The position numbers and the translations under genes are program-made. The notes beneath the pieces are model-generated. The model did no database searches. It saw only the letters and a list, made by a program, of their open reading frames with translations, and was not told the origin of the DNA. From Heptranchias perlo (taxonomy: Eukaryota), in NCBI RefSeq assembly GCF_035084215.1, contig NC_090335.1, positions 48,112,001 to 48,176,000 on the forward strand: 64,000 bases of DNA. Reading direction: 5' to 3'. Shown one piece after another: positions 17,001 to 64,000 of the stretch; position 1 is the first letter of the stretch; the number at the start of each line of letters is the position of its first letter.

Positions 17001-20000
17001 TTTCTGAGCCACTTACCTTGTGCCGAGGACTGTTCTCTTAGGACCCCCGTGGTGGCCTTGAGCCGTGTGATTTTATCAGCCGGGCAGCCGCTTCCTGACG
17101 ACTTCCCGGCCCTTTTGATTGGGAAGTCGTCATGCGGAATCCTAATGAATCGCTGAGGCTCCCCGCCTCCGCTCCTGGAAGGTCTGGCTGATTGCTCGCT
17201 GCATTCCCATACATAGATAGAATTGACCTCATAGGGCTCGATTTTCGGACGTCCGAGACGGCGGGTTTGTGGCGGGGGGGGCTCCGAAAATCGGGGATTC
17301 CCGGGGCGGGTCCGGAGCCCAGCGCACGCAACCCCTGGGACTCTTGCCGGCAATTAAAGCCGGCGGGATCCTACTTAAACCAATTAATTAGACAGTTCAG
17401 GTCGTTTGCAGTCCTGTGAATTGTCTTTCAAGTGGATTTTTGTGTCTTACTGAAAATCTCTAAACGTAAATTCAGGTGAAACACCAGGGTGTTACAGCTC
17501 TAAAAACAACAAATTAATAGTTAGTCATGAAGCTATTGGAAATTTACAGTCGGCTCAGATTTTAAAAAAATATTCAGTACTTACCAACAATTTACATAGG
17601 CTGAGAAATTCCTCGGAGCTGGTTCTGTTTTTTCACTGTAACTTTGCCAGAAGTGAGGGGAAAACCAGATCTGAGGAATTTCCCGGCCATAATTTATTCC
17701 ATTGTATGGGTATAAAAATGTGCTTTATTGCTACTTTTTTTTAATAAATGATGAAAAAACTGATCTGGACAGGGGTTAATGTATATTTATATGAATATTT
17801 GGTGAAGGTTTTATTTGTAACTGCATTATTTTCATCCCTTATTCAGAGACGATCACTGTTTCCTCTGATAAGCACTCTGTTGCAGAGGTTGGCAAAGATG
17901 TCACCCTCACGTGTATATTTGAGGGCGACAGTAATCCTACGGTGATCTGGGAGAAAGAAGGTGTGACGGGAACTGTGCACATGTACCTGAATAATAAGGA
18001 TGACTTCAGCGAACAACATGTCAACTACACGAAAAGAACTGAAGTTCATGGAAGCTCAGCCAGCAAAGGAAACGCATCTCTTACACTGAAGAATGTTCGT
18101 ATCTGGGATGAAGGAAGTTACAAGTGCTCTGTCAACACAAACAAAGGATTTGGAGAAGCAGAAGTGAATCTGAATGTTTGGGGTATGTCAGCTGTCCAGT
18201 TCTCTTTCTCTGTCGGTTTGTAATCAGGGTAAAGTGCAGCTCGGTTTCATATTTTGAATTATTACATAAATTTCCAATGGCACCAGAGAAACAAATAGTT
18301 TTCATTTCATTTAATTGTTAACAAAGTTTGTCACAGAAAGGCAATAATAATGGATTCTCACATGGAATAGCGAGCTAAATATACGCCTGAATTTCTGCGG
18401 GGTTCTCCTGATCTCCTGCCGTAAAATCAGCAGTTATGCATCAGGTGGGCTTTGGGTGTCCCCCCACTCCCTAACCTCTAGGTGTTGAACTGCCGGCCGC
18501 CTATTTATCAGGCGAGAAACCAGTGGGTGGAAGTTGAATACCGGCCCCAGTAATTGTGCCGAACTCCATTTTTCCTAGCTAGTGAGTATAGCAAAGCAGG
18601 CAGTATAGCTCAGATCTTCTAGCTTAGTATCACTCTCAGTACCGGTCCAGTAGTATAATTGGTGAAGAGCATCCTATTTCTGTGTCTAAATGTACTGGAT
18701 CACCCGTGCGCAGCAAGGAGAGGAGGATGGAGCGGGGAAGATCACATGCCTGTAAAGATACTTGTCCAATTTTCTGTCCATTTAAATTAATAGAAGGAAA
18801 ATCAGAATGGCTCCCTTACAGGTGTGCTATTCTCGCTTCCTGATTTTCTTTTCGACACTGCGTCCAGGCAATTCAATACCTCAGGCTCAGGAACAGGAAA
18901 ATCTGCCCAATGGTGTTCTTAGAGTTAACAAAAAAACCTGAAAAAGTGACATTTGATGGATTTATTCTAATTTACATCAAGAAAAAGAACCACAATAAGA
19001 CCAAAATGGCAATGTTTACAAAGAAACTTGGCTCATCAGGACCATGTAATCATCTATATATCTTTATGCTGGAATTTGGGGCTTTGGATTAAATAAAGCT
19101 TTCAACTCATTAGTGTTTTTTTGTTCTGAAGTAAACACCATTGGTTACAGGCACATTCTTATCTATGTGGTGCTCTATATAATGACATGCTAAAGTTCAG
19201 TGACTATAATTCATATTTCTTTCTTAGCAAAAAGTAATGATGGTATCCATATCTCACGGAAGTCTGATGAAGTGCTGTCTTGCCAATCATCAGGGTGGTA
19301 CCCAGCCCCAACGGTTACCTGGCATGACAAATCTGGTAACAACTTGAACAAGGATGGTAAACTAACCCTGACAATAGACAACAATGGACTTTATAACATG
19401 ACACATGACCTAAAACAACACCGTAACTCGAAGAATCAGTATATCTGCACCATAAAGCATAAGTGGATGGAAGATCGTATTCGAGTGGTATTCTCAGGTG
19501 AGCTTATTTGTGAGGTTAATGCTTATGTTAAAGGTAACTTAACAGACCATTGTAACAGTTGTGGAAAAGAAATATATCTGTTGGGTAGAAGGAGGAACAC
19601 AGCAAGAACACGACCAAAGAGGCGGAGTAAGGATAAAAATAACCTAAGGAGAGGCAGAAATATTTTAAAGACACAGGAAACGTATACCTTGAAATTGTAC
19701 GGTGTGATATTAGAGTGAACGCTTAACATAGTCATTTGAAATTTCTTTGTCTGGTGCATTAATGGATGTATTAACCCAACAAGAGGGATTCATGAAATGT
19801 TTATTTGCAGACAGAAAGTAAAAACCCAGATCAATAATTTAAGGGATAAATTGAGTAAAACTGTTATCACATGTTAGGAATTGACTGATGTTAAAAGAAT
19901 TCTTGATATCAGTCTGCACAAATAATTGGATTAATGTCTTGTTAAAATAGCAGCTAAAGAAATGTTATTAATACAAATACATGATGTATGTTTTAGTATG

Positions 20001-30586: not shown

Positions 30587-30718
30587 CGGTTCAACGAGCA
30601 GCCAGTGTGATGTAACGCACTGTGCGCTACAACCGCAATAATCTCCCAGCGATCTTAACTTTCTTTAGAATAGCCAACAGGTCTAACCAACTGGTAACAC
30701 AATGCTTTCTTCAGCAAT

Positions 30719-30767
30719 ATGGGTCCATTTAGAAACATTGTTCTCAAACTTTGGTTCCTTGTATTAG
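30719..30767 (+). CDS. Gene 2 leader exon (MGPFRNIVLKLWFLVL)
   Basis: ATG, hydrophobic stretch, donor G|gtaagc, then a 92-nt intron to the V exon. Confidence 0.82.
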
Positions 30768-33700
30768 GTAAGCGTTCTCTTTTACCCCAGTTAACATTTA
30801 TTCTAGTTGTACTCAGATCATTTGGATTTTATGTTCCTACTTGTAATTTTATGTCCCAGGGCCTGCTGTCGGTCTGAGAGTGATCCAGTCTCCTTCAGTT
30901 CTGTCCCTCCTGAGAGGACAGACAGCTCGGATCAACTGCACCCTGTTACCCGGAGAGGAGCGGGTGGATTCGGTGAGATATTACTGGTATAGAACAAGAG
31001 ACAATCCTGGCATCAGAGGCAACGAAACTAAGAATTTCCTCAATCAAAGCTCTCGCGTGTCTGTGTCTGAGGGTTCGCTTGTCATTCGGGAGGTGATTGT
31101 GAAAGATTCAGATACTTACCACTGCCTGGTTCTTAAAGAGACGCCTCGACCCGGGAGAACCTTGACAGGAGAAGAAACAGAACTGAACATCCAAGGTAAT
31201 TATGAAATAAAAACAGAAAATGTTGGAAACGCTCAATAGGTAAAGCAGCATCTGTGAAGCGAGAACCAGAGTTAACGTTTCAGGTCGATGACCATTCATC
31301 AGAACTGGAAGAATTTAGACATTTAAGTTTCTAAGGTCATGGACCTGAAACGTTAATCCGGTTTCTCTCTCCACAAATACTGCCTGACCCGCTGAGTGTT
31401 TCCAGCATTTCCTGTCTTTATTTCAGATTTCCAACATCCGCGGTATTTTGCTTTTGATCCATGGTAATTAGATTAACTAAAACTGAAATAATTCAATATA
31501 TGGGGCAAAGGAAACAGAAATAGCCGCACACACATCTAATCTGGGACTGACATGTTCTGTGCACTGGGAGCTAGGCTGAATACACCAGCGTTTAGCTTTA
31601 ATTCCACAATAACCATTCAACAGCAGGGACTTTCATATAGTTTTAAAACTTCGACGGAAGAAAAACAACCAAAAGACAAAACTGTAGAATGCTGACACCA
31701 ATATTAACGGCTGAATATTATTTATGTAAGAAGCGAATTACAAATAGCTAAACGGATTTTGTGAACTAAGTATTGTCAATTTATTTCAGTTTTCTTGACG
31801 ATATTGATCCAAAGAAAAATAAACGGAATTTGTGCCCGATAGAAACTTATTGTGAAGTCACGGGATATTATTCTGACCCGTTTTTCATTGTTACATGTGT
31901 GTTATATTTTATTATATGTATCTGGTGATTTGTATATTGAGACACAATCTAATCAAATTGATTCTGCAGTTTCCCATTTAATATCAAATATACACGTTTT
32001 ACATCTTTTACACAGTTGTTCTCTATATAATATTTGCTGTAACTCAGATTGTTATAATTTGAGTTATTTTAATGTGTTTTTTTAGCGGAACCTCAAGTCT
32101 ATCTCTCTGCGGATCCAGAGAATGAAGTTGCTGGGATTCAGACTCTGATTTGTGTGGCTGTGGGATTTTTTCCGAGAGATCTGAACATTTCTTGGATTGT
32201 AGAGGGAAATGTCTCCCATCAAACAGAACAGGGCTCCCCGACTGTAAACAGTGACGGCACCTACAACCTGAGCTCCCGGCTGTGGATTAGAGACACTCAC
32301 TGGGACCGGGGAACGGTCGTCACCTGTCAGGTACAACACGTTACAGTCCTCGGCTCAGTGAGGAAAAAGATCAGTCACAGCGGAGGTAAGTTGTTTACGA
32401 AGGGGATAAATCCCACAGTTCGCTACTCCCAGTTACTGTTAATATACGGAGGTTAAAATAGCAATTTTGTACAACCATATGTAAAACGCGACTCATTAAT
32501 CCGGATAGAATTACAAACAGTAACGCGGTATGAACACTGGAAACATACGGTCTCAATTTTATACATAGCAATGAACAAATTGCACTTCTAAATAAATTAA
32601 ATTGATACAATGGACCCGCGGTGTTTTATTGGTAAATATTACAAATATTGCTGGTATATTGAGAAGGTAGGGGGTCAATTGAAATGGGCAACAATAACCA
32701 ACTAGACTGAAACGCAAACAGCTGGAAATTCACAACAGCTGGGACCTGATGTAATATCTCAAATATTTCTCTTTACAGATGCTAACTGACCTGCTATGTA
32801 TTTCCAACATTTACGATCTTTTGTGCTTTATTTATGCCGACTAGATAGATTCGCTTTTAGTAACTGCGTTGTACAGCAGAGAGTAACTCAAAGAAATATA
32901 AAAATGGCATGCAAACACCAGCGAGTTTTAAACCGTTGTTCTAATACTGAGCTGTTTAAGAGCTGCAGTAATTTATAAACAGCCCACTGTGGAATCGCTC
33001 TTAACTCCTGAGTTCTAGTATGAAAAGGGGCTGACTCGATAAAATATGATAAATGACAAAAAAGCACAATCACTAAATATCATTTGTTTAACTGAAAAGT
33101 TCTGCATCACTGAATTAATTTAATTTATTCAAGCTTCATGAATCGACAGAGAAAAAGTTGCCGGAACCATAATGGACAACGTTTAAACAGTACAAAATAG
33201 GCAAATAAAACACCTTCATATTGGATATAAGGACATCCCGATCGTGGAGGTTATGCCTCAGAACCGCTGTACTGTGCTCACTCTGAGTTACCTTGATTTC
33301 TATATTTGAAAAGGAAGAACTTAGAAGGAAGGGGAGGAAAGGGACGTGAAATAAGGTTAGGTAAAAGCTAGCACGGACACATGAGCAATGGGCCGAATGG
33401 TCTCCTGTGCTGTAATTTCTATAGTTCCGATTAACAACCCTTTGCCATTTAATCAGTTTACAGAATTCTCAATTTCCGTAGCAGCTGTGAATAAACTGCA
33501 CACATTTTTGCAAATAAAGCGCCCAATATTACCAAACGAATACTGTGCATATCAATGCAGAAGTGGCATTATAACATTTACATGTCTTCCACCAAGTCTC
33601 CGCTTATTTATTCAGTTATGTACACAGGCAATCGCCCTGATTTCAGGTTAAGGGTGATATTGCACCCCTACATCTTTGGATGCAGAATGAACAGTCTTAC

Positions 33701-36700
33701 AGTCACTAACCCTGCCAACTCCATTGTTTAGTTAAATTACAAATCACGTCGATCTTTTAGATTCTGAAGGAGAATTTGTCCATTCAGTTCATTCCTTCAC
33801 ACCCCAGACCATTAAAAGGCACTGTATCCTGTTTCCATCCCTGCTCATTAAAGCCCAATTAATAATAATATGACTTTAATCCCCAATCTCGACGTTTTTT
33901 TGTACAATTATTTAGCGCGTGGTTGTAACCCACTTCTTTAAGGCAACATGTGCAAATGAAACAGCGAGAAGACAGATTTAAAACATACAAAGACACCGAT
34001 TAGCCGCCAGCAGCGGTGAGAGCTGCGTTTACACAGCCCGCTTCAAGCGCTTGAGATGGTGAAGGTTGTGAGATGGCGTGGGCCAATTGTATTTGTGCGT
34101 CTGCAGGAAACTTTGCATAATAATCTTGGACAGCAGTGAATTCATTACTGACTTGAGAAGTATTAGGGAATGGGAGCACAGGGGCTTGCCTTTGGCTGCC
34201 ACGGTTTGGTTGATGCATAGTGTTTTTTTGAGCGCGTATCAATGCAGAAGCGACATTATAACTCAGAAGACAACAGAATGCGCTAAAAACGTTGGGGGTA
34301 TGAGATTTCCTCTTGTAGGCTGCCTCCCATTGGTTTCTGTTTCCAAAACGTGCAGTACAAATACAGTCTTAACTTTAAAAAAATGTATTTTATGCTGCCA
34401 TTATGTGCTAATGGAAGCATAAAATATTGACCTGCCAGGCCGGAAAACTAACAAAAGCTGATCAACTGCTTCAGAAAAGCTCACACAGCCCCAGAAAAGC
34501 TGGTAGCTCAATAAGAACCTTCAATATAGGCCACCTCACACATGAAGTCAAGGAGCTAGACTGAGAGTGTAGTGGGATATGGGTTTGCCATAACAATCAG
34601 CAGGTATAGCCAACAAACAGCAACAGTAGTGATTTAGAAATTACTGAAGAAAGATGTGAATGTTGAAGGCATGAGATTTATTTTCTATGGGAGAACCACC
34701 CCCTTCAGAATAGTTTGACTTTTGATAACTGATTTTGTGTATGTATTGACATTTTGGAACTTACTGTAATTCTAAATCTTGGTGTGATTTTAAAAAAATC
34801 AAACAAAATGCATCACCCCATTTTATTTCCAAACTCAGGCAATTCCATGATGCAGTCACTTGTATTCTCAAATAAAGATATTTGGCGTTATCTCAAAAAG
34901 GCAGCTGCAACCACACTTTAAGAAAAGAAACCTTCAAATGAAACAACAGGCAGGCATGCCCCAAATGGTTCCTTTGAGGAAAATAAACGTTTTAAAAGCT
35001 GTATTTTAGCAGCTTATTTACTATATACAAACTTCTTTTGAAGTAATCACTAAATAAGCACACCTTTAAATGTGACTCTCAGAAACCATCAACTCATTTT
35101 CAATTGTCCACCTCAAGTTTGCACCCATGAAACAATGAGAGAAAGTAGCACCTGATTTATTCTAGTTCTGTCCCCCAACCAGTCAGGTCCTGACAGGCTC
35201 CAGTCCCACCATTCAAATGATCTGATTGATTTATACTGACAACCTACAATGCAGGTGAAAAAAAGTTGAAGTTTCTTGTGAAACACTGACAAACTGACAG
35301 GTTGGAATATTAACCGTCAGTTTGAAACACTGATGGTTGTCATGTATGCATTGATGCAAAACAAAAATTGTGTAAGCCAACTTTAGGAAGTAGTCTTGCT
35401 AAGATTACAGTTGGATATAGTCAAATCTATGGGGTGAGGGGATGGGAAGGAGAAAGCATGCATAAAGTACTTCTGCAATTGGCCAACATAATTTGAGCAG
35501 AGAGTTGAGGTTACGCTGCCCTCTTCAAACCTGTGCTACTGCTGTAGCAGAGAGTAGCGGGGGTGGGATGGGGGTGAGGGAGGTTCAGTAAGAAGGTGGC
35601 AGAGCATTGGTTTTGTGCACTCAAGCACACACAGATAATTTGCTTACTAATCTCTGACCATGGTAGATTTATTACCGATCATGAAGAGTTAGAGAATGGA
35701 AACACAACAGGCTGTCTTAGCATTTAACATTATTTTTGAATATCTATACAGATGTTTGGTACAAAGTGAAAATATCACAAGACCCATCTCTTAGGGTGCA
35801 GGTATACAGCTAATTTTGTAATGATGCAAAGTAGTTTTGGGTGTGCTTCAATTAAAAGTGGTAATATAACTCAGGAAGCTATGCAACACACTAAAGCAGT
35901 GAGGTTTGACATCGCTCCAGGCAGTGGTGACATCCCTCATGAATAATGGGGCTGCCATCATAGAGATCTAGGACTCCATGGAAGAATGGGCTTTCTTCTC
36001 CAACCAATAAAAAACTGCTACATTTAATTGCGGATTATTAGTAGAAATAGGATAATGCATGATTATGCAATATTACTATTTCTACAGATGGAAGTATTCT
36101 TGACATCTATTCCTCAATGGAGTTCCTGCTGGGTGAATCCTATTGGTATATTTCACAAGAACAAGCCAATTCAAAAACTCATAAATGACAGATATTAACT
36201 ATATTTCTGATTCAATATATGGTTTAAATAATATACATGATGTGAATTTAAAATTATTATATGTAACTTAATATACATTGGTCATGTTTGTAATAAGCAA
36301 CTAATGATTTTGATTCACATTTCAATCATAATTTTGAAGGTTTCCCCAAATACTACTATTACTTCAGCCTGCTGAGTCTCATCCTCGTTGCACCATTTTG
36401 TCTCTGGATTATTAAGAGTCAGTGCAATAAACTGAAGAATGGAAAAGGTAATCAGATACAATGTGCATTTTATTTTGGTACTGAACTAAACATATCAAAA
36501 ATGAAAAACATATTTAAATCCTAGAAGAAATAATTCCAATAAAAATACATTTTAAAAAATGAAAACCAATTACATTTTCCATCTAAAATACAGTATTTGG
36601 AATGAACATACTAACTGTATACTAACTGATAGAACATACTATCTGCAAAATTAATATAATTAAGCTAAGGGAACTGTACTAATATAGGTGTATATGGAAA

Positions 36701-39700
36701 TATTTTAACACAGCTAAATATAAATATATTCACATTCAACTATCCTAACATAGCTTTCATGTGTAAATGATGAAGCCTCAAATGTAAGTAAGTTAAAAAT
36801 GGGAATAGTGATACTCACTAGTTATTGACTCTTTTTACTGTTGCTTCTCACTACATACACCACAATACTATAAGTTACCCTAAGGCATTTATGATATTCA
36901 TGATATTCATTTAGATTCATCGATCCATGACAAAAATGTAGATGGTCAAATAATGGGAACATTGGTGAATGCATCAGTAAATGAAGTAAGTATATTGTTT
37001 GATATTTTTCCTACACTGTATGCATCTGCACTGTGCTGAACTGACCGTGCATTATAAAGCAATGTCAACTTACTTAAATAAATTGGCAGCACTCTTGGAC
37101 ATGATGCACTGGGAACACAAAGGGGCCAGAATATCTGGCGCCAGTGGGGTGGATTTTTTTTTACCACCTGGGTGTTAAGCATTGCCTGGGCGGAGCGCAG
37201 CGAGAAAAATTGGGTGGGGAGGATCACATCACTGTTATGGGGCCTGCCCAACTTTCCTTCCAGCATTAATTGGTACTAGCATGGAGTTTGCAAAATCTTT
37301 CTGCAAAATCCATTCCAACTTCTTCTATGTACTCAGGGCCCACAGTCTCAAGGGTCAGCTTCTCCTGGTGCCTTAGGGGTTTGATATTCAGATGGGCTCC
37401 AACAGTTTTGTGCCATTTCCTTCTCTTAGGGGCTCCTTTTTCCTGTAAGCAGGTATAAAATGATGAAGTGTAGGGAGTCTGAAAAGTGCACATATTGCCA
37501 CAGTACATCCAAACTTATACACAACTCAATGAGCTAGCAGCATTCACATAGATGATAATGGAAGCTACAATGGTGGGCATAGTTATTCTGATGAGTGAGC
37601 ATCATAAGTTTTCCTTGGAAGCAGGCATGTTAATGTGTGAAAGAAGCTGAAGAATGGCACGTGTCCACATTCCAGATGCAGCTGGTTAAGATAAAAGTCT
37701 TTGTTCCAGGTATGCTGTACCCATACACTTGATGTAGGTAAATGCAGCAACTCTTACCTTGGCAAACTTCCTCCAGGTGGATTTTTTTTTCATCTGGACA
37801 GGAGACCTGGACCTATACATTGGGAGGGTTGCATTAAATCATTGTGACCTCATGCCAGGCAAACCAGACAGCTATGCTTTGTACACCTCTGTCCCAAGAA
37901 GAGCAGTCCCTTTTTGTTGCACCTCTTCCTGAAAAGCTCTACAAGGCTGAGTCAAAAAAGTTGGTTGTCATTTCACTTGGCCCAGGCCTGCTTCCATCTT
38001 AAGCCTTCTTTGACTTGATTTCAACAAGTTTCACCTGCCAAAAATAACCTATGCTGAATGCCGCAGAACTCCTTTAAATAATGTTGGCAGCACTTCTTAT
38101 GAATTGTTGCTATGCTGGGTATACCGTTCACACCATTAGCTTGCTCGCTGCACAGGGATCAATGAATAATTATGTGAATAAGCAGTCTCTGAATGTCGCA
38201 GAAGGTCTACTCCATGTTCCTTCATTGCGAGCTGTGCTTACAGCATCCAGTCTGGGCTGCAATTAGCTCAGACAGGAAAATCTACCCTTAAGTTACAAGC
38301 TATCCAGGGCAAGGTTGTCCAAGGATTACTGACATTAGCAATATAGGTCAGACTTGGGAACTTTAATACACTTTGTTTGTAAATTCTCCAAATTGAAGAA
38401 GTTTTGGGACCAATGCTGAAGCAACACGTAAGTCTACCGGCCTTGCTACGATAATCTAGGGAAATACTAAAGGTGGATGGGGAAGGGTGCTATTTCTCTA
38501 GAACTACCATTTATTTAGTTCTAACACTTTTGGCCCTTAGTTAGAAGATGATAGCATTGTAAAGGTTGCAAGCCAAAACCAACTGAGGAATATTCTTTGA
38601 AATAATAATAATCAACTATGAAAGCGATGATACTAGGATTTTGCATTGGATCTCAGTCTTGTTAGCTAATTGTTCCAGGATGTAAAATGATGAATTGCAA
38701 TCCCCCAAAAAATCTTTGTTTTTTTATTTGGCTACCCCACCTGGTTCAGATGAATGACAATAATAGTGTCATTGGATCTTCCCTTGCCACAATGGCGTAT
38801 GTGGCTTATGTAATTCACATTTAATGGACTATTTTATTTTAAACTATTGCTGAAGTTTAACTATTAATGAATCCCTCTTTGAAGTTCTGTCATTTTTTAA
38901 TCAGTTTTCGCTCTTCTACTCCTGAAAGCATTTACTCGCACTGGAGTATGGCACAGCAGCTGTCACATAATTTGTCCAGATGGCTTTTCTTCATGTGTTT
39001 AGTCCAGGCAGTGAACATTAGCAGGTTGTTTGACCATAGGGGTAACATGGGCAAGTCCAATCATGTGCACATGCACACACACTTTCCAGCAGGAGTCACT
39101 GGGAAGCATTCAGGAGTACAAACCTTTTTCTATTCCTAGAACAATAGCACTCAGGCCAACTGTACTGTACTAGCTGTTGCCGGATTGAGATCAGGGAATC
39201 AAAACTGAAATCTTCTGGTCTGTATGGATTAATAAATAGTGGGTGAGGCTTAACCCACTAGTCCATCACTAAATATACTGCAGCAGAGAGGGATTGGGGT
39301 TGATTGTTGTCTCTGGCACATATCGGGTGGGTGGTGAATGGGGTGTCTGCTCCGCCCACCCAATCACATCGGCGGAGACCGGATCGATTTTAGCGGCCGG
39401 GTCTCACTTAAATACAACAGGTGAGCTGTCAGCTCTAATTACGCTACTTATAGGGAGCTTGCTGTTTGGGTGGGCCGGAAATCTATCGGGCTGGCCACCA
39501 TTTAAAGACATCCTGCATTCTTGAAAGGCAAGGTTCACTTTTCAAAGATGGTCTGTAGACAGTGCATTATTGAGGCAGCAGGCAGCATGATATTGGACAG
39601 GGCCCCCCAATTCTCCAATACAGCTGTGCAAGTCCAAATGAGGAATAGGAAGGAGGTCGTTTTTACCAGCGAAGGGTGCCAAGTGCCCTGGCAAATTAGC

Positions 39701-40291
39701 CAGCAGCAGTGGAGAGAGCTGGCTGGGCATATAAATCGTTGATTTCAGTGGAATGAAAATCAGACAGGGTCTCTAAAGGGTATGTGATCCACCCGGTCAG
39801 AGTACTGCCCAGGCAGTGAAGACAAAAATCTACAGTTTAAGTTGCTTCCCATTGGATGTTTGCTGTTGGAGTTGGATTATTGCCATTTCCATGTAGCACA
39901 ACTGGAAGACAACATTTATGTTAATTAAGGTCATGCCAAAAAATGGTATAATGAGAAAATGTGCCGTGTTTTTAATGATATCAGCATGTATGTTCTTGTT
40001 GTTTATTGTTACTTTATTACTATGTTACAGGGTAATGTTTCTGCCAGCAATGAATCTCTGCATTATGCATTTGTTCAATTCAATCATCCTCTAAAAAGGA
40101 AGCAAAAACAGGAATTGAAAAGACCACAGCAGGACCAGGCAACTGAATATGCTGTTTTAAAGGTCAAAGATAAAAATAATCCATTCTATGAAGAATCGGT
40201 ACATTACTCCACAGTCGGCATTTGTCCCACATCAAAGAGAACACAAACTGCTAACTACAATGCAACCATATATGTTTCGCTTAAGCACTAA
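30719..40291 (+). CDS. Gene 2 (spliced): non-rearranging VJ-C1 type I membrane inhibitory receptor (PRARP/VJC1/SIRP/NKp30-like architecture); exons 30719-30767, 30860-31195, 32086-32385, 36340-36447, 36915-36985, 40031-40291; 374 aa
   Basis: Six exons with GT-AG introns of phase 1,1,1,1,0 join into an open 1125-nt CDS: leader, V with J-like end, C1 domain, TM, and a cytoplasmic tail with four tyrosine inhibitory-type motifs. Confidence 0.85.
30860..31195 (+). CDS. Gene 2 VJ-type IgV exon (GPAVGLRVIQSPSVLSLLRGQTARINC...YYWYR...DSDTYHCLVLKETPRPGRTLTGEETELNIQ)
   Basis: Acceptor cccag|, donor G|gtaat; Ig/TCR-like V.QSP start, C, WYR, D..TY.C, and a J-like G strand TGEETELNI in the same exon; overlaps ORF 30880..31239. 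Confidence 0.93.
31203..31457. mobile_element. Penelope-derived inverted-repeat element with a hammerhead-like motif (31270-31306, - strand)
   Basis: Imperfect inverted arms; the - strand reads AGUU-CUGAUGA-AU-GGUC-AUC-GACC-U-GAAAC-GUU-AACU. Confidence 0.7.
32086..32385 (+). CDS. Gene 2 C1-set exon (AEPQVYL...TLICVAVGFFPRDLNISW...NSDGTYNLSSRL...W...TCQVQH...)
   Basis: Acceptor tttttag|, donor G|gtaagt, 300 nt; C1 hallmarks P.VY, C...GFFP..L.I.W, N.DGTY, C.V.H; overlaps ORF 32154..32456. Confidence 0.93.
36340..36447 (+). CDS. Gene 2 transmembrane exon (GFPKYYYYFSLLSLILVAPFCLWIIKSQCNKLKNGK)
   Basis: Acceptor ttttgaag|, donor G|gtaatc, phase 1-1, 108 nt; about 21 uncharged hydrophobic residues followed by basic residues. 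Absent from the ORF track. Confidence 0.8.
36915..36985 (+). CDS. Gene 2 short cytoplasmic exon (DSSIHDKNVDGQIMGTLVNASVNE)
   Basis: Acceptor atttag|, strong donor GAA|gtaagt; its 71 nt convert phase 1 to the phase 0 required by the last exon. Confidence 0.72.
38930..39268 (-). mobile_element. Old tRNA-head SINE, possibly DeuSINE-type
   Basis: Degenerate tRNA-like head at the right end on the - strand; body recalled as Deu-domain-like; unverified. Confidence 0.4.
39290..39830 (+). mobile_element. Harbinger-derived remnant with Myb/SANT-like fragment
   Basis: RAPQFSNTAVQV...RKEVVF...QQWRELAGHIN in ORF 39521..39742. Confidence 0.55.
40031..40291 (+). CDS. Gene 2 terminal cytoplasmic exon with LHYAFV, TEYAVL, VHYSTV and TIYVSL motifs
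   Basis: Acceptor tgttacag|; open to TAA at 40291 (ORF 39959..40291); two ITIMs and two TxYxxL ITSM-like motifs. Confidence 0.87.
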   Translation, partial: GNVSASNESLHYAFVQFNHPLKRKQKQELKRPQQDQATEYAVLKVKDKNNPFYEESVHYSTVGICPTSKRTQTANYNATIYVSLKH

Positions 40292-41477: not shown

Positions 41478-43410
41478 CACTAGTTAGGCCACAGCTTGAG
41501 TACTGCTTACAGTTCTGGTCACCACATTACAGGAAAGATATGACTGCACTAGAAGGCACAGAGGAGATTTCTGAGGATGTTGCCAGGACTGGAGAATTTT
41601 AGCTATGAGAAAAGATTGGATAGGCTGGAGTTTTTTTCTTTGGAACAGAGGAGGCTGAGGGGAGATTTAATTGAGGTGTATAAAATTATGAGGGGCCTAG
41701 ATAGAATGGATAGGAAGGACCTATTTCCCTTAGCAGAGGGGTGAATAACCGGGGGGCATAGATTTAAAGCAATTGGTAGAAGGATTAGGGGGGAGCGGAG
41801 GAAATTTAGGATAGTAAGGGTCTGGAACTCACTGCCTGAAAGGGTGGTACAGGCAGATACCCTCAGTGCATTTAAAAAAGGTGCTTGGATGTGCACTTGA
41901 AGTGCCGTAACTTACAAGTCTACGGACCAAGAGCTGGGATTTTTTTATTCGTTCATGGGACGTGGGCGTCACTGGCAAGGCCAGCATTTATTGCCCATCC
42001 CTAATTGCCCTTGAGAAGGTGGTGGTGAGCTGCCTTCTTGAACCGCTGCAGTCTGTGTGGTGAAGGTTCTCTCACAGTGCTGTTAGGTCGGGAGTTCCAG
42101 GATTTTGATCCAGCGACGATGAAGGAATGGCGATATATTTCCAAGTCGGGATGGTGTGTGACTTGGAGGGGAACGTGCAGGTGGTGTTGTTCCCATGTGC
42201 CTGCTGCCCATGTCCTTCTAGGTGGTTGAGATCGTGGGTTGGGAGGTGCTGTTGAAGAAGCCTTGGCGAGTTGCTGCAGTGTATCCTGTGGATGGTACAC
42301 ACTGCAGCCACAGTGCGCCGGTGGTGCAGGGAGTGAATGTTTAGGGTGGTGGATGGGGTGCCAATCAAGCGGGCTGCTTTAACCTGGATGGTGTCGAGCT
42401 TCTTGAGTGTTGTTGGAGCTGCACTCATCCAGGCAAGTGGAGAGTGTTCCATCACACTCCTGACTTGTGCCTTGTAGATGGTGGAAAGGCTTTGGGGAGT
42501 CAGGAGGTGAGTCACTCACCACAGAATACCAAGTCTCTGACCTGCTCTTGTAGCCACAGTATTTATGTGGCTGGTCCAGTTAAGTTTCTGGTCAATGGTG
42601 ACCCCCAGGATGTTGATGGTGGGGAATTCGGCAATGGTAATGCCGTTGAATGGCAAGGGGAGCTGGTTAGACTTTCTCTTGTTGGACATGGTCATTGCCT
42701 GGCACTTGTCTGGAGCGAATGTTAATTGTTACTTATCAGCCCAAGCCTGGATGTTGTCCAGGTCTTGCTGCACGCGGGCACGGACTGCTTCATTATCTGA
42801 GGGGTTGCGAATGGAACTGAACACACTGCAATCATCAGCGAACATCTCCATTTCTGATGTTATGATGGAGGGAAGGTCATTGATGAAGCAGCTGAAGATG
42901 GCTGGGCCTAGGACACTGCCCTGAGGAACTCCTGCTGCAATGTCCTGGGGCTGAGATGATTGGCCTCCAACAACCACTACTATCTTCCTTTGCGCTAAGT
43001 ACGACTCCAGCCACTGGAGAGCTTTCCCCCTGATTCCCATTGACTTCAGTTTTACTAGGGCTCCTTGGTGCCTCAATCGGTCAAATGCTACCTTGATGTC
43101 AAGGGCAGTCACTCTCACCTCACCTCTGGAATTCAGCTCTTTTGTCCATGTTTGGACCAAGGCTGTAATGAGGTCTGGAGCAGAGTGGTCCTGGTGGAAC
43201 CCAAACTGAGCATCAGTGAGCAGGTTCTTGGTGAGTAAGTGCTGCTCAATAGCACTGTCGACGACACCTTCCATCACTTTGCTGATGATTGAGAGTAGAC
43301 TGATGGAGCAGTAATTGGCCGGATTAGGCTGAATAGTTCTTTTTCGGCCGGCACAGACATAATGGGCCAAATGGCCTTCTTCTGTGCCGTAAATTTCTAT
43401 GATTCTATGA
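41478..43410. mobile_element. CR1 3' fragment (+) split by a family-B LINE (-, about 41940-43322)
   Basis: CR1 stops at gagctggga and resumes at ggattaggctg through to its TTCTATGA tail; the insert carries RT ORFs 42729..43514 and 42072..42515. Confidence 0.9.
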
Positions 43411-44032
43411 ATTAAGTCCTGGGACAGGACAATACAACTCCTTATAAGTTTACTGCTGCTGGGATTTAAAATGCTGCAGCTATTTAAAGGGGCACATATG
43501 TTTTTGATGTGCAAAAAACTGGAGTTGCTAATATGCCAGAGAGAGCAGCAGCCTTGAGGGTGTCAGTAGGGCAGGGAGCTCCATAAGAGGCTGTCTCAGG
43601 GAGTATGGAGGGAGGTTATGGTGGCAGTCAGTGCAACCTCCACCACCCCAAGAACTATCATACCATGCAGAAAGAGATTCAATCACCTCATAAGATAAGT
43701 GAGGTAAGTCAAAGGTACTGCTCCAAATACCACCAATACTCACCTTCTTACCTGTCATACTACTTCTCTTTCAGCACCTGGTTGTCAGGGATACTAACAT
43801 ATGATAGGCCAACCTCTGCAAGCACTCAAGCACAATCTTAACTCAAAACCACTTTGTCAAAGCACATTATCTGCCACAAGAATTACTTCTAGTCTTCAAG
43901 ACTACATAGAATTGCATGGAAATTACAATATGGAAACTGGCCATTCAGCCCAACCAATTTATGTTGACACAAGCTGCAATCTTAATCCCATGTGCCCAAT
44001 TTGCTCCCTTATTTATTTTCCCCTTTCCTCAA

Positions 44033-56345: not shown

Positions 56346-57363
56346 ATAAGAACATAAGAAATAGGAGCAGGAGTAGGCCAATCGGCCCCTCGAGCCTGCT
56401 CCGCCATTCAATAAGATCATGGCTGATCTGATCCTAACCTCAAATCTAAATTCATGTCCAATTTCCTGCCCGCTCCCCGTAACCCCTAATTCCCTTTACT
56501 TCTAGGAAACTGTCTATTTCTGTTTTAAATTTATTTAATGATGTAGCTTCCACAGCTTCCTGGGGCAGCAAATTCCACAGACCTACTACCCTCTGAGTGA
56601 AGAAGTTTCTCCTCATCTCAGTTTTGAAAGAGCAGCCCCTTATTCTAAGATTATGCCCCCCAGTTCTAGTTTCACCCATCCTTGGGAACATCCTTACCGC
56701 ATCCACCCGATCAAGCCCCTTCACAATCTTATATGTTTCAGTAAGATCGCCTCTCATTCTTCTGAACTCCAATGAGTAGAGTCCCAATCTACTCAACCTC
56801 TCCTCATATGTCCACCCCCTCATCCCCGGGATTAACCGAGTGAACCTTCTTTGTACTGCCTCGAGAGCAAGTATGTCTTTTCTTAAGTATGGACACCAAA
56901 ACTGTATGCAGTATTCCAGGTGCAGTCTCACCAATACCTTATATAACTGCAGCAATACCTCCCTGTTTTTATATTCTATCCCCCTAGCAATAAAAGCCAA
57001 CATTCCGTTGGCCTTCTTGATCACCTGCTGCACCTGCATACTAACTTATTGATTTTCTTGCACTAGGACCCCCAGATCCCTTTGTACTGCAGTACTTTCC
57101 AGTTTCTCGCCATTAAGATAATAACTTGCTCTCTGATTTTTCCTGCCAAAGTGCATAACCTCACATTTTCCAATATTGTATTGCATCTGCCAAATCTCCG
57201 CCCACTCACCCAGCCTGTCTATATCCCCTTGTAGGTTTTTTTATGTCCTCCTCACTCTCTACTTTCCCTCCCATCTTTGTATCATCTGCAAACTTTGATA
57301 TGTTACACTCGGTCCCCTCTTCCAAATTGTTAATATAGATTGTAAAGAGTTGGGGACCCAGCA
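56346..57363 (-). mobile_element. Young CR1 3' fragment inserted in a MITE (about 56219-57429)
   Basis: ORF 56452..57039; CATAAGAA tail; 8-bp TSD TCTATAAC at 56338-56345 and 57364-57371; MITE TIRs GGGGTCATTTT / AAAATGACCTC. Confidence 0.9.
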
Positions 57364-58714: not shown

Positions 58715-61101
58715 GTTTTTTTTATTCGTTCATGGGATGTGGGCATCGCTGGTGAGGCCGGCATTTATTGCCCATCCCTAATTCCCTTGAGAAGGTGGTG
58801 GTGAGCTGCCTTCTTGAACCGATGCAGTCCGTGTGGTGAAGGTTCTCCCACAGTGCTGTTAGGAAGGGAGTTCCAGGATTTTGACCCAGTGACGATGAAG
58901 GAACAGCGATATGTTTCCAAGTCGGGATGGTGTGTGACTTGGAGGGGAACATGCAGGTGGTTCCCATGTGCCTGCTGCTCTTGTCCTTCTAGGTGGTAGA
59001 GGTCGTGGGTTGGGAGGTGCTGTCGAAGAAGCCTTGGCGAGTTGCTGCAGTGCATCCTGTGATGGTACACATTGCAGTCACTGTGGGCCGGTGGTGAAGG
59101 GAGTGAATGTTTAGGGTGGTGGATGGGGTGCCAATCAAGCGGGCTGCTTTGTCCTGGATGGTGTCAAGCTTCTTGAGTGTTCTTGGAGCTGCACTCGTCC
59201 AGGCAAGTGGAGAGTATTCCATCACACTCCTGCCTTGTGCCTTGTACACGGTGAAAAGGCTTTGTGGAGTCAGGAGGTGAGTCACTCGCCACAGAATACC
59301 CAGTCTCTGACCTGCTCTTGTAGCCACAGTATTCATATGGCTGGTCCAGTTAAGTTTCTGGTCAATGGTGATGGTGGGGGATTTGGCGATGGTAATGCCG
59401 TTGAATGTCAAGGGGAGGTGGTTAGACTCTTTCTTGTTGGAGATGGTCATTGCCTGGCACTTGTCTGGCGCGAATGTTACTTGCCACTTATCAGCCCAAG
59501 CCTGGATGTTGTCCAGGTCTTGCTGCATGCGAGCTCGGACTGCTTCATTATTTGAGGGGTTGCGAATGGAACTGAACACTGTGCAATGATCAGCGAACAT
59601 CCCCATTTCTGACCTTATGATGGAGGGAAGGTCACTGATGAAGCAGCTGAAGATGGTTGGGCTTAGGACACTGCCTTGAGGAACTCCTGCTGCAATGTCC
59701 TGGGGCTGAGATGATTGGCCTTCGACAACCACTACCATCTTCCTTTGTGCTAGGTATGACTCCAGCCACTGGAGAGTTTTCCCCTTGATTCCCATTGACT
59801 TCAATTTTACTAGGGTGCCACACTCAGTCAAATGCTGCCTTGATGTCAAGGGCAGTTACTCTCACCTCACCTCTGGAATTCAGCTCTTTTGTCCACGTTT
59901 GGACCAAGGCTGTAATGAGGTCTGGAGCCGAGTGGTCCTGGCGGAACCCAAACTGAGCATCGGTGAGCAGGTTATTGGTGAGTAAATGCCACTTGATAGC
60001 ACTGTCGACGACACCTTCCATCACTTTGCTGATGATTGAGAGTAGACTGATGGGGCGGTAATTGGCCGGATTGGATTTGTCCTGCTTTTTGTGGACAGGA
60101 CATACCTGGGCAATTTTCCACATTGTCGGGTAGATGCCAGTTTTGTAGCTGTACTGGAACAGCTTGGCTAGAGGCGCAGCTAGTTCTGGAGCCCAAGGCT
60201 TCAGCACGACAGCTGGGATGTTGTCGGGGCCCATAGCCTTTGCTGTATCCAGTGCACTCAGCCGTTTCTTGATATCACGTGGAGTGAATCGAATTGGCTG
60301 AAGACTGGCTTCTGTGATGGTGGGGATATCGGGAGGCGGCCGAGATGGATCATCTACTCGGCACTTCTGGCTGAAGATGGTTGCAAACGCTTCAGCCTTG
60401 TCTTTTGCGCTCACGTGCTGGACTACGCCATCATTGAGGATGGGGATGTTTACAGAGCCTCCTCCTCCCATTAGTTGTTTAATTGTCCACCACCATTCAC
60501 GACTGGATGTGGCAGGACTGCAGTGCTTTGATCTGATCCGTTGGTTGTGGAATCGCTTAGCTCTGTCTATAGCATGTTGCTTCCGCTGTTTAGCATGCAT
60601 GTAGTCCTGAGTTGTAGCTTCACCAGGTTGGCACCTCATTTTTAGGTACGCCTGGTGCTCCTGGCATGCTCTTCTACACTCCTCATTGAACCAGGGTTGA
60701 TCCCCTGGCTTTTTGGTAATGGTAGAGTGAGGAATATGCCGGGCCATGAGGTTACAGATTGTGTTGGAATACAGTTCTGCTGCTGCTGATGGCCCACAGC
60801 GCATCATGGATGCCAAGTTTTGAGTTGCTAGATCTGATCTGAATCTATCCCATTTAGCACGGTGGTTGTGCCATACAACACTTTAGATGGTATCCTCAGT
60901 GCGAAGACGGGACTTCGTCTCCACGAGGACTGTGCGGTGGTCACTCCTACCAATACTGTCATGGACAGATGCATTAGCGACAGGTAGATTGGTGAGGACG
61001 AGGTCAAGTAAGCTTTTCCTTCGTGTTGGTTCGCTCAACACCTGCCGCAGGTCCAGTCTGGCAGCTATATCCTCCAGGACTCGGCCAGCTCGGTCAGTAG
61101 T
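58715..61101 (-). mobile_element. Family-B CR1-group LINE, 5'-truncated, frameshifted ORF2
   Basis: ORFs 59824..60816 and 58989..59849 (PWFN, KAMGPDNIP, YRPISLL, QFGFR, GVPQGS, FAD). Confidence 0.92.
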
Positions 61102-61504: not shown

Positions 61505-64000
61505 TATAGAACCATAGAACCATAGAAAGGGTACAGCACAGAAGGGGGCCATTCAGCCCATCATGTCCGCGCCGGCTCGAAGAACAACCAGGTGCCCATT
61601 CTAATCCCAACTTCCAGCATCCAATCCGTAGCCTTGCTGCTTACAGCACTTTAGGTGTAGGTCCAGGTACTTTTTAAAAGAGTTGAGGGTCCTTATCTCT
61701 ACCACCAATTCAGGCATTGCATATACCCACCGCCCTCTGGAATTGCATACACCCACCGCCCTCTGGGTAAAAAAGTTTTTCTTCATGTCCCCTCTAATCC
61801 TTCCGCCAATCAGCTTAAATCTATGTCCTCTAGTTCTTGAACTCTCCGCTAGGGGAACAGGTACTTCCTGTCTACTCTATCTGGGCCCCTCATAATTTTG
61901 TACACCTCAATCAAGTCTTCCCTCAGCCTCCTCTACTCCAAGGAAAACAACCCCAGCCTATCCAATCTCTCTTCGTAGCTGCAATTTTCAAGCTCTAGCA
62001 ACATTCTTGTAAATCTTCTCTGCACTCTCACCAGAGCAATTACGTCCTTCCTGTAATGTGGTGACCAGAACTGCGCACAATACTCCAGCTGTGGTGTTAC
62101 CAGAGTTTTATACAGTTCCATCATTACATCCCTGCTTTTGTATTCATTACCTCAGCTAATAACGGAGAGCATTCCGTATGCTTTCTTCACAACCTTATCT
62201 TCCTGTATTGCCACCTTCAGGGACCTGTGCATATGCACTCCAAGGTCTCTCACTTCCTCTACCCCTCTCAATATATTCCCGTTTACTGCGTATTCCCTTT
62301 TACTGTTTGCCCTCCCTAAGTGCATTACCTCACACTTCTCTGGGTTGAACTCCATTTGCCACTTTTTCGCCCACTCCACCAACCCATTGATATCTTCTTG
62401 GAATCTACAGCTATCCTCTTCGCTATCAACTACACGGCCAATTTGCCAATCATACCCCCTACATTCAAGTTGAAATCATTAATATATACCACAAACAGCA
62501 AGGGACCCAACACTGAGTCCTGTGGCACACCACTAGAAACGGATTTCCATTCGCAAAGACATCCATCGACTTTTACCCTTTGTTTCCTGTTACTGAGCCA
62601 ATTTTGGATCCAATTTGCCACATTTCCCTGTATCCCAAGGCTTTTACCTTTCTGACCAGTCTGCCATGTGGGACCTTGTCAAATGCTTACTAAAATCCAT
62701 GTAAAGCATCCACTACACTATCCTCATCAATCCTCCTTGTCATTTCCTCAAAGAATTCAATTAGATTTGTAAGGCATGACCTTCCCTGAACAAATCCATG
62801 CTGACTATCCCTGATTAAACCATGCCTTTCCAAGTGACAGTTTATCCTATCTCTCAGTATTGATTCTAATAGTTTGCACACCACTGAGGTAAGACTGATC
62901 GGCCTGCAATTGTTCGGTCTTTCCCTCGTACCCTTTTTAAACAATGGTATTACGTTTGCAGTCTTCCAGTCCTCCGGTACCTCCCCTGTATCTAGTGAGG
63001 ATTGGAAAATGATCCTCAGAGCATCCACTGTTTCCTCCCTGGCTTCCTTCAATAGCCTAGGAAACAATCCATCCGGCCCTGGTGACTTATCAACTTTCAA
63101 GGATTCCAGTCCCTCAGGTACTTCCTCTCTCGTTATGTTCACCTTATCCAATATTTCACACCTCTCCTCTTTAACTACTACGTCCGGATCATTCCTTTCC
63201 TTTGTGAATAAGGAGACAAAATATTCATTTAAAACCCTACCCACATCCTCCGTTTCTACACACAAGTTACCCTTATCATCCCTGATAGGTCCCATCTTTT
63301 CCTTGGCTATCCTCTTGTTCTTAATGTACTGATAAAACATCTTTGGCTTTTCTTTAATCTTACTTGCTAATATTTTTTCATGCCCTCGCTTTACTTTTCT
63401 TATTTCCTTTTTTACGTCATCCCTGTACTTTCTATACTCCTCTAGGCTTTCTGCAGTATTTAGTTTTCTGTGACAGTCATAAGCTTTCTTTTTCCGCTTT
63501 ATCTTGCCCCGTATACTTCTAGACAACCAGGGGGCTCTAAATTTGGCAGTGCCACCCTTTTTCTTTGAGGGGACGTGTCTGCATTGTACCCGTAGAATTT
63601 CACTTTTTAGTGTCTCCCACTGGCTTGCCACTGATTTCTCCTCAAGTAGTTGCGTCCAGTGCACTTCTGCCAAATCACCTCTTAGTTCTGTACAATTTGC
63701 CTTCCCCCAATTTAAAACATTTACTCCTGATTTAACTCTGTCCTTTTCCATAATAATGCTAAATCTAACTGAATTGTGGTCACTATCCCCAATATGGTCA
63801 CCCACTGTCACTTCACCCACTTGCCCATCTTCATTTCCCAGGACTAAATCTAGAATTGCATCACCTCTTGTTGGGCTTGTCACGTACTGGCTAAAAAAGT
63901 TCTCCTGAACACCGATCAAGAATTTTGCGCCCTCTGTGCCCCTCACACTGTTTGAATCCCAGTTGATGTTAGGCTAGTTGAAGTCCCCTACTATTATTGC
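61505..64000 (-). mobile_element. CR1 LINE ORF2 (continues beyond the window), degraded
   Basis: ORF 62690..63946 and downstream RT fragments; CATAGAAC tail at 61505-61527. Confidence 0.92.

Follow-up and report, generated by a model that had tools for sequence, protein, structure and literature searches.

Several described gene families combine a VJ-type V domain with C1-set constant domains. PRARP, described by Fu et al. in 2019 (J Immunol 202:1992), is reported to comprise non-rearranging VJ-C1-TM-ITIM genes of bony fish, amphibians, reptiles and birds, with a VJ exon, a C1 domain in the non-avian species, a transmembrane (TM) segment and an ITIM tail, and to be absent from mammals; we know of no earlier report of it from cartilaginous fish. 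UrIg, the subject of a 2023 paper, is reported to be a secreted protein containing several C domains. For UrIg2, 9-11 C domains of the C1 type plus a TM segment have been described (PMC12227049), PRARP has been counted among the VJ genes relevant to antigen-receptor origins (PMC10751288), and the SIRPs have been argued to be antigen-receptor-precursor-like since 2009 (PMC2785349). The C1-set domain itself is recognized by three hallmarks, namely an (F/Y)(F/Y/H)P motif at the BC loop, 13 residues separating the B-strand Cys from the C-strand Trp, and xVxH after the F-strand Cys (PMC2785349).

The gene considered here lies in a window of 64,000 nucleotides, the whole stretch of DNA of the sharpnose sevengill shark, Heptranchias perlo, that was analysed, which is free of N stretches and has no portion resembling human DNA. 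The initial annotation of this DNA had noticed a VJ exon and a C1 exon built like an antigen-receptor chain and had related them to genes proposed as relics of the pre-RAG receptor. These exons turn out to be the ectodomain part of a six-exon gene with a RefSeq model of 374 aa. They are not an orphan relic but the head of what appears to be an ordinary inhibitory receptor, already present in RefSeq, which also has a TM segment and carries four ITIM/ITSM-like tyrosines. In our assessment it is very probably an intact, transcribed and non-rearranging gene for a 374-aa type I inhibitory receptor, for which a mechanism of the SIRP-alpha type is the most likely one.

Gene structure and transcription

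The six exons of the gene are as follows.

30719-30767, + strand: exon 1, with the ATG at 30719, encoding most of the signal peptide, MGPFRNIVLKLWFLVL, plus 1 nt; phase-1 donor GT at 30768
30860-31195, + strand: exon 2, encoding the end of the leader and a complete V-set domain with the J-like G strand GEETELNIQ; phase 1 at both ends; no recombination signal sequence (RSS)
32086-32385, + strand: exon 3, encoding the C1-set Ig domain, with FFP, a Cys-Trp interval of 13 residues, and CQVQH; phase 1
36340-36447, + strand: exon 4, encoding a short stalk, the uncharged TM helix YYYYFSLLSLILVAPFCLWII and a basic stop-transfer segment; both boundaries in phase 1
36915-36985, + strand: exon 5, the first cytoplasmic exon (cyt1), (D)SSIHDKNVDGQIMGTLVNASVNE, in which the phase changes from 1 to 0
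40031-40291, + strand: exon 6 (cyt2), encoding the cytoplasmic tail with LHYAFV, TEYAVL, NPFY, VHYSTV and TIYVSL; TAA stop at 40289-40291

The translations of these six exons are exact, ordered substrings of the RefSeq protein P0097, named "immunoglobulin kappa light chain-like isoform X1" (374 aa), exon 1 supplying residues 1-16, and the whole-protein analyses were run on this public sequence, which is identical exon by exon. Exon 5 was located by comparison with the catshark orthologue. A second RefSeq isoform, X2 (P0103), is devoid of the TM exon 36340-36447, and a soluble form produced from it may also exist. Because of the Pfam E-values of the two Ig domains and the exact match to the public protein model, a chance arrangement is excluded; the gene is real and expressed, and had already been predicted in the public annotation.

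Splicing can be followed in RNA contigs assembled from four runs of one sample. The joints of 31195 to 32086 and of 32385 to 36340, both with GT..AG introns, occur in all four runs, and the loose end that extends past 36447, again in four of four, reads ATTCATCGATCC..., the sequence with which exon 5 begins. The split leader with a 92-nt intron pointed out in the initial annotation is borne out by the intron at 30768-30859, which begins with GT and ends with AG and whose joint (30767 to 30860, GT..AG) is covered by a contig of run X1. One RNA contig begins at 30676, which places at least 43 nt of 5' UTR before the ATG. An Rfam scan of the window returned no match, and a B7-H3/H4-like gene is the only neighbour that the window contains.

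Domains, germline configuration and tail

The V exon matches the Pfam V-set profile with an E-value of 3.5e-10 over profile positions 1-108 of 109, so that the G strand is included. It reads ...DSDTYHC, 14 residues and then GEETELNIQ (C105 to G120 in P0097), one residue more than the 13 previously counted between the Cys and the G, whereas the joining of V and J-like G strand in a single exon with a phase-1 donor was described correctly. From the unusual TGEET of this strand it had further been suggested that the domain may not form V-V dimers of the Ig style. We reject this inference, since the GEET motif is a substitution private to Heptranchias, with G-x-G-T found in 11 of the 12 orthologues. 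The C1 exon deserves the label of a textbook C1-set domain that it had been given, with a Pfam E-value of 4.7e-18 and all three hallmarks present (FFP; 13 residues between Cys151 and Trp165; C209-Q-V-Q-H213), and it also carries three N-glycosylation sites. No second C1 exon is found in the window, nor a second C1 domain in P0097. In an AlphaFold2 (AF2) model built from a 32-sequence alignment, the ectodomain is mostly predicted with pLDDT 80-94, followed by a TM helix at 233-263 and a disordered tail.

The VJ-C1 gene does not rearrange. The earlier remark that no CACAGTG heptamer follows the second Cys stands in a stricter form, as the V exon contains no heptamer of this type even when one mismatch is allowed, and no heptamer-spacer-nonamer site occurs in 30600-32400 or anywhere else in the window. 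V and the J-like strand share one exon, the main contigs are identical to the germline, and the check for junctional diversity proposed in the initial annotation revealed none in the transcript contigs. For three runs out of four, the V exon shows 0 differences between the genome and the RNA contigs, which can hide rare variants, and a single difference, T>C at 30899, is seen in a separate low-depth X2 contig.

The TM segment contains no charged residue. Behind it, the tail of P0097 bears tyrosines in LHYAFV (Y300), TEYAVL (Y328), NPFY (Y341), VHYSTV (Y347) and TIYVSL (Y369), that is, four [SIVLT]xYxx[IVL] motifs and one NPxY. The motifs are mostly conserved, and the majority of the other orthologues scanned have between two and four of them. 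The tail is ITIM/ITSM-like, and these motifs are what suggests that it may act as an inhibitory one. Outside the two Ig disulfides, the only cysteines are 249, 257 and 353, and there is no C-terminal interchain or stalk cysteine.

Orthologues and place among V-C1 receptors

Orthologues are present in at least 12 sharks and rays as well as in Callorhinchus, the genera being Scyliorhinus, Mustelus, Stegostoma, Hemiscyllium, Heterodontus, Cetorhinus, Pristis, Hypanus, Mobula, Narcine, Hemitrygon and Callorhinchus. Their NCBI names are inconsistent from species to species (SIRP-alpha-like, SIRP-beta-1-like or SIRP-beta-like, Ig kappa-like, IgH-like, TCR-beta-like). Hypanus and Mobula, a stingray and a manta, have two C1 domains, which are near-identical recent internal duplicates. 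In the V tree the shark family forms a clade with support 100/99, outside the starred tetrapod SIRP clade (99/98), and the deep branches of the tree do not resolve. Among other vertebrates, the caecilian protein P0055 (XP_029433897) aligns end to end (20-372 against 44-395, E 4e-33), four-tyrosine tail included, and the paddlefish protein P0071 (XP_041092942) aligns across V, C1 and TM. These two uncharacterised V-C1-TM-ITIM genes have the domain order and ITIM tails of the shark gene and a similar Tyr-rich start of the TM segment (HYYYFLIVGL... versus YYYYFSLLSL...), and of all proteins compared they give the best reciprocal BLAST pairing (117-125 bits), but they differ in sharing only 27-32% identity and in their long branches, and support for placing them with the shark family is weak (83/74; AU p 0.50). 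The shark gene represents one conserved orthologue group of Chondrichthyes within a wider set of non-rearranging V-C1-TM-ITIM receptors. This set takes in SIRP and the two homologues from paddlefish and caecilian, and probably PRARP as well.

How the gene relates to the named members of this set can be judged from several lines of evidence. The possibility that SIRP (SIRPA/PTPNS1) has its true chondrichthyan orthologue in this gene, whose second C1 domain would have been lost or never acquired and whose ligand would be CD47-like, is in our view rather unlikely. It would agree with the automatic SIRP-alpha and SIRP-beta names at NCBI and with the collinear V-C1 match to solved structures of SIRP-alpha and SIRP-gamma, of which the SIRP-alpha ectodomain (PDB 2wng) is the best collinear one (22-219 against 4-207, 78.5 bits). 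It would also agree with language-model features, by which SIRP-alpha clusters rank first (0.96), and the four-tyrosine tail of the shark gene resembles that of SIRP-alpha. However, a single C1 domain is present where SIRPs have two, the V and C1 sequences both fall outside the tetrapod SIRP clades, and the family profile gives the snake SIRP, a true reptile one, only 20 (V) and 25 (C1) bits, compared with 41-57 bits for the V-C1-TM genes of paddlefish, caecilian and chimaera. The initial annotation had named firm nesting within SIRP or germline-joined Ig light chains as the result that would count against its reading; such nesting is not observed, the family forming its separate clade, while an AU test with the family and SIRP as one clade does not reject their sisterhood (p 0.31). 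Orthology to PRARP, which would make this its cartilaginous-fish representative, is a more serious possibility, if still short of an even chance. The gene fits the architecture reported for PRARP in having a VJ exon, the C1 domain of the non-avian species, a TM segment and ITIMs; its closest homologues outside Chondrichthyes, the paddlefish and caecilian genes, come from taxa with reported PRARP orthologues, and the listing of PRARP among the VJ genes relevant to antigen-receptor origins (PMC10751288) is in keeping with this reading. On the other hand, no bird match and no reptile V-C1-TM match occurs among 80 V-domain relatives.

The resemblance to antigen receptors raises the question of whether the gene is a surviving relic of a pre-RAG antigen-receptor precursor, of the UrIg-type lineage, rather than a derived innate receptor. 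The germline VJ-C1 layout is indeed antigen-receptor-like, as first proposed: it combines a split leader, a single VJ exon and a C1 domain without RSS, its V domain is matched best by Ig lambda, shark VNAR and TCR alpha and its C1 domain by IgG CH3 and UrIg2, and Foldseek ranks a TCR beta chain and Ig light chains highest for the model, with Fab light chains flooding the list. Yet SIRPs show the same features and have prompted the same argument since 2009 (PMC2785349), and the structural comparison does not separate IgSF families, all Z scores lying at 12-14 (B7-H6, VNAR, CH3, MHC II); the model C1 domain, for instance, superposes on IgG4 CH3 with Z 12.8, an rmsd of 2.2 A and 31% identity. The lack of resolution in the deep V tree likewise weakens a relic interpretation, as does the combination of one C1 domain with an ITIM tail, compared with the many C domains of UrIg and UrIg2, and we regard it as distinctly improbable. 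With UrIg and UrIg2 the gene shares the split leader, the single-exon VJ, the C1-set constant domain and an elasmobranch-specific or retained distribution. Nevertheless, no ITIM tail has been described for them, whereas Heptranchias has four tyrosines of the inhibitory type, and membership in UrIg/UrIg2 is rejected on account of the single C domain. For the C1 domain, the best matches include 9dmx, a UrIg2 structure, which scores no better than IgG CH3, and no UrIg2 V domain appears among the best 60 PDB matches of the V domain. As for a germline-joined Ig light chain, or another gene of the rearranging lineage, the RefSeq name of P0097 and the frequency of light chains as the commonest Foldseek match would suggest one, but the TM exon and ITIM tail effectively refute it by gene structure. 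The C-terminal interchain cysteine and the RSS are missing as well, orthologues bear four other automatic names, and V similarity to any light chain is at most 27 bits, which leaves this origin next to no credibility. An Ig or TCR chain is equally ill matched by a gene with no RSS, no stalk cysteine and an uncharged TM segment, that of TCR being charged for CD3.

Proposed mode of action and meaning

Because the V tree keeps the gene outside the SIRP clade, there is better support for a receptor that works like SIRP-alpha than for one that is SIRP itself. The likeness lies in a V domain that does not rearrange and has a J-like G strand, in the collinear C1-set domain behind it, and in an uncharged TM segment continued by a tail with four ITIM-like tyrosines. 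From its start, the receptor comprises a signal peptide, a single V domain of the germline VJ type, a single C1-set domain, the uncharged TM helix and the disordered tail. According to a SIRP-alpha-type mechanism, the V domain would bind a putative conserved ligand through its CDR-like loops, with the C1 domain probably serving as a spacer, and ligand engagement would lead Src-family kinases to phosphorylate the tail tyrosines. The phosphotyrosines could then recruit phosphatases of the SHP-1/SHP-2 type and so damp activation of the presumed host cell type.

A bolder proposal would unite the shark group and the paddlefish and caecilian genes in a gnathostome-wide lineage older than the split between chimaeras and sharks, distinct from SIRP and UrIg, lost in mammals and descended directly from the V-C1 stock behind the antigen receptors, with the adjacent B7-H3/H4-like gene as a co-evolving ligand in the manner of NKp30 and B7-H6; we consider it a speculative and unlikely one. 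The gene is of a known kind, SIRP-alpha-like or PRARP-like, and fairly ordinary, and it leaves unchanged the picture drawn from SIRP, PRARP and UrIg. Its value is mainly that of a data point and of an annotation correction, given the inconsistent RefSeq names for one orthologue. Non-rearranging VJ-C1 genes inform what the RAG transposon invaded, and to these the Heptranchias gene adds a conserved, expressed, single-C1 and ITIM-bearing example found in all main lineages of Chondrichthyes, with collinear homologues in basal bony fish and an amphibian.

Gene structure and transcription

The SIRP-like VJ-C1 receptor gene is real, intact and expressed, and it has the following six exons:

30719-30767, forward strand: exon 1, leader; ATG at 30719, 16 codons plus the first base of the next; GT donor at 30768
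30860-31195, forward strand: exon 2, VJ; rest of the leader and the whole V domain, ending in phase 1
32086-32385, forward strand: exon 3, C1; encodes EPQVYLSADPE...LICVAVGFFPRDLNISW...VTCQVQHVTV
36340-36447, forward strand: exon 4, transmembrane (GFPKYYYYFSLLSLILVAPFCLWIIKSQCNKLKNGK), from downstream ORFs; both ends in phase 1
36915-36985, forward strand: exon 5, 71 nt
40031-40291, forward strand: exon 6, tail ORF starting at 40031, from downstream ORFs; four ITIM/ITSM-like tyrosines

The transmembrane exon and the tail ORF have incompatible phases when taken as neighbours; the catshark orthologue P0002 carries 24 residues between its transmembrane segment and tail, which pointed to the 71-nt exon, and this exon takes the phase from 1 to 0. 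Each of the six exon translations occurs unchanged, and in the same order, in P0097 (374 aa), the Heptranchias RefSeq protein named "immunoglobulin kappa light chain-like isoform X1", and the gene is therefore already modelled in RefSeq; whole-protein analyses were based on this public sequence. A predicted isoform X2 (P0103) leaves out the 108-nt transmembrane exon in frame and would be a V-C1 protein lacking the membrane segment, with the tail retained, possibly secreted; the exon-skipping joint was found in none of the RNA contigs of four runs.

These four public runs come from one sample of one individual. RNA contigs contain the spliced joint 30767|30860 (GT..AG) in run X1 and the joints 31195|32086 and 32385|36340 (GT..AG) in all four, and the contig overhang past 36447 reads ATTCATCGATCCATGAC..., the start of exon 5. 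Intron coverage is nil apart from a repeat at about 31250-31450. In the V exon the main contigs show no differences from the genome and thus give no pointer to junctional diversity, with the proviso that contigs may conceal rare variants. The short interspersed repeat of intron 2 (31247-31445) reaches contig depths in the thousands in all four runs, and this signal is due to transcripts from other genomic copies.

Domains, recombination signals and orthologues

The initial annotation proposed a germline-joined VJ plus C1 ectodomain, and most of its particulars are borne out: the split leader with its 92-nt intron is present, V and the J-like G strand share one exon ending in phase 1 (Pfam V-set, E 3.5e-10, profile positions 1-108 of 109), and the C1 exon is of textbook type (Pfam C1-set, E 4.7e-18), carrying FFP, 13 residues from Cys to Trp, and xVxH, the hallmarks of the C1-set (Hatherley et al., PMC2785349). 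The G strand reads ...TYHC LVLKETPRPGRTLT GEETELNIQ, and the distance from the second Cys to G, given as 13 residues, is in fact 14. The absence of an RSS also holds, as no heptamer-spacer-nonamer was found in the whole 64-kb window, no relaxed RSS in 30600-32400 and no heptamer in the V exon with one mismatch allowed; the 17 bare heptamers in the window are dispersed, none adjoining the V exon.

When the V exon was searched exhaustively against 1.84 billion protein representatives, four close clusters emerged (54-71% identity), after which identity falls sharply to 38% or less. Orthologues occur in the sharks Scyliorhinus, Mustelus, Stegostoma, Hemiscyllium, Heterodontus and Cetorhinus, in Pristis, Hypanus, Mobula, Narcine and Hemitrygon, and in Callorhinchus as a fragment, P0110, with which P0013 clusters. 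Their names in NCBI automatic annotation conflict (SIRP-alpha-like, SIRP-beta-1-like, Ig kappa-like, Ig heavy chain Mem5-like, TCR beta-like). Eleven of the 12 aligned species have the canonical J motif G-x-G-T-x-L; the sole exception is Heptranchias with G-E-E-T, its second Gly replaced by Glu (GAA, codon E122, given as window 31222-31224) through a single G-to-A change whose base is backed by RNA contigs. Because G-E-E-T is thus restricted to Heptranchias, the earlier suggestion that this motif may prevent Ig-style V-V dimers does not apply to the family, the chondrichthyan orthologue group.

Most aligned orthologues keep the tail motifs LHYASV, TEYAVLKVKDKNN and TxYASL, and about half keep xVxYSTV. 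Part of the tail (40031-40190, P0097 residues 289-341) gives a weak, sub-threshold match to Pfam DUF4578 (PF15147; E 2e-4, 22 bits, cut-off 27), which is also precomputed for the Hemiscyllium orthologue. The stingray (Hypanus P0003/P0083) and manta (Mobula P0098) orthologues each have two near-identical C1 domains, the two copies being each other's nearest relatives within each species, through either independent duplications or gene-conversion homogenisation, the latter as described for UrIg2 C domains.

Relatives and placement among receptor families

Family HMM scores of proteins beyond the orthologue group
Protein: V (bits), C1 (bits)
Callorhinchus paralogue P0024: 55, 57
Sawfish paralogue P0056: 50, 52
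Paddlefish P0071: 48, 41
Caecilian P0055: 45, 43
True snake SIRP-beta-1 P0074: 20, 25

The caecilian protein aligns with P0097 in a single HSP (residues 20-372, 27% identity, E 4e-33) that includes the four-tyrosine tail, and the paddlefish protein aligns across V-C1-TM, with a likewise Tyr-rich start of the transmembrane segment. In the V tree, whose reference set was assembled without authentic Ig, TCR, UrIg or PRARP sequences, the family forms a clade (100/99), reptile SIRP V domains form their own starred clade apart from it (99/98), and paddlefish, caecilian and frog V-TM genes attach to the family weakly (83/74); AU tests rejected neither family plus SIRP (p 0.31) nor family plus paddlefish and caecilian (p 0.50). 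P0024 and P0056 (Pristis) represent a second, paralogous V-C1-TM lineage, with an IPPP motif in the FG loop that recalls the MYPPPY loop of CD28/CTLA-4 and a C1 domain scoring higher against Pfam C1-set (7.9e-22) than that of the Heptranchias gene.

By sequence, the C1 exon is nearest to IgG CH3 (44.6 bits per domain) and UrIg2 (9dmx), and the V exon to Ig lambda, shark VNAR and TCR alpha, all at 27 bits or less. P0097 gives single collinear V-C1 alignments with SIRP-alpha (2wng) and SIRP-gamma (4i2x) (22-219 against 4-207, 78.5 bits), and by protein-language-model features two SIRP-alpha clusters rank first (0.96; 210 and 205 of 256 features in common). An AF2 model from 32 sequences has pLDDT mostly 80-94 in both Ig domains; it places the transmembrane helix at residues 233-263 and leaves the tail disordered. 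Foldseek matches this model best to a TCR beta chain and to Ig light chains, and a representative-wide structure aligner returned B7-H6 (Z 14.1), VNAR (13.8), IgG4 CH3 (12.8) and MHC II (12.8), scores so tied that they confirm the folds and nothing beyond.

V-C1-C1 is one defining feature of SIRPs, whereas this gene has V-C1. The architecture that Fu et al. reportedly described for PRARP in 2019 agrees with that of the gene, a candidate member of that family. A literature search found no published description of the gene. Membership of UrIg/UrIg2 was rejected, as these have many C domains (PMC12227049). Kinship of V-C1 receptors with the antigen-receptor precursor was argued for SIRP already in 2009 (PMC2785349) and later for PRARP and UrIg (PMC10751288).

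Predicted signalling and genomic neighbourhood

The gene encodes a type I membrane protein whose ectodomain combines V and C1 domains and whose transmembrane segment is uncharged. Beyond the two Ig disulfides its only cysteines are 249, 257 and 353, so no extracellular Cys is available for an interchain bond. The tail tyrosines Y300, Y328, Y347 and Y369 lie in [SIVLT]xYxx[IVL] contexts, and NPFY occurs at 338-341. By analogy with SIRP-alpha and other ITIM receptors, we infer that the receptor probably works like SIRP-alpha: the V domain would bind ligand, the tail tyrosines would then be phosphorylated, and SHP-type phosphatases would be recruited.

The receptor gene has a B7-family gene about 11 kb upstream of it, in the same orientation, and much of the remaining window is retrotransposon debris, with long reverse-transcriptase ORFs, one of 750 aa:

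17795-18220 and 19194-19715, forward strand: B7-family gene
8607-10856, 42732-43562, 56455-57045, 58992-60882, 62693-63973 and others, both strands: retrotransposon debris

The V exon of the B7-family gene is nearest to CD276/B7-H3 (1.6e-23) and VTCN1/B7-H4 (3.4e-20); for its IgC exon the match is to C2-set_3, a family of butyrophilin type (1.9e-13). This neighbour could be a candidate ligand gene. The 50-80% conservation of the receptor's V domain among elasmobranchs, seen in their sequences, suggests a conserved ligand rather than a polymorphic one.
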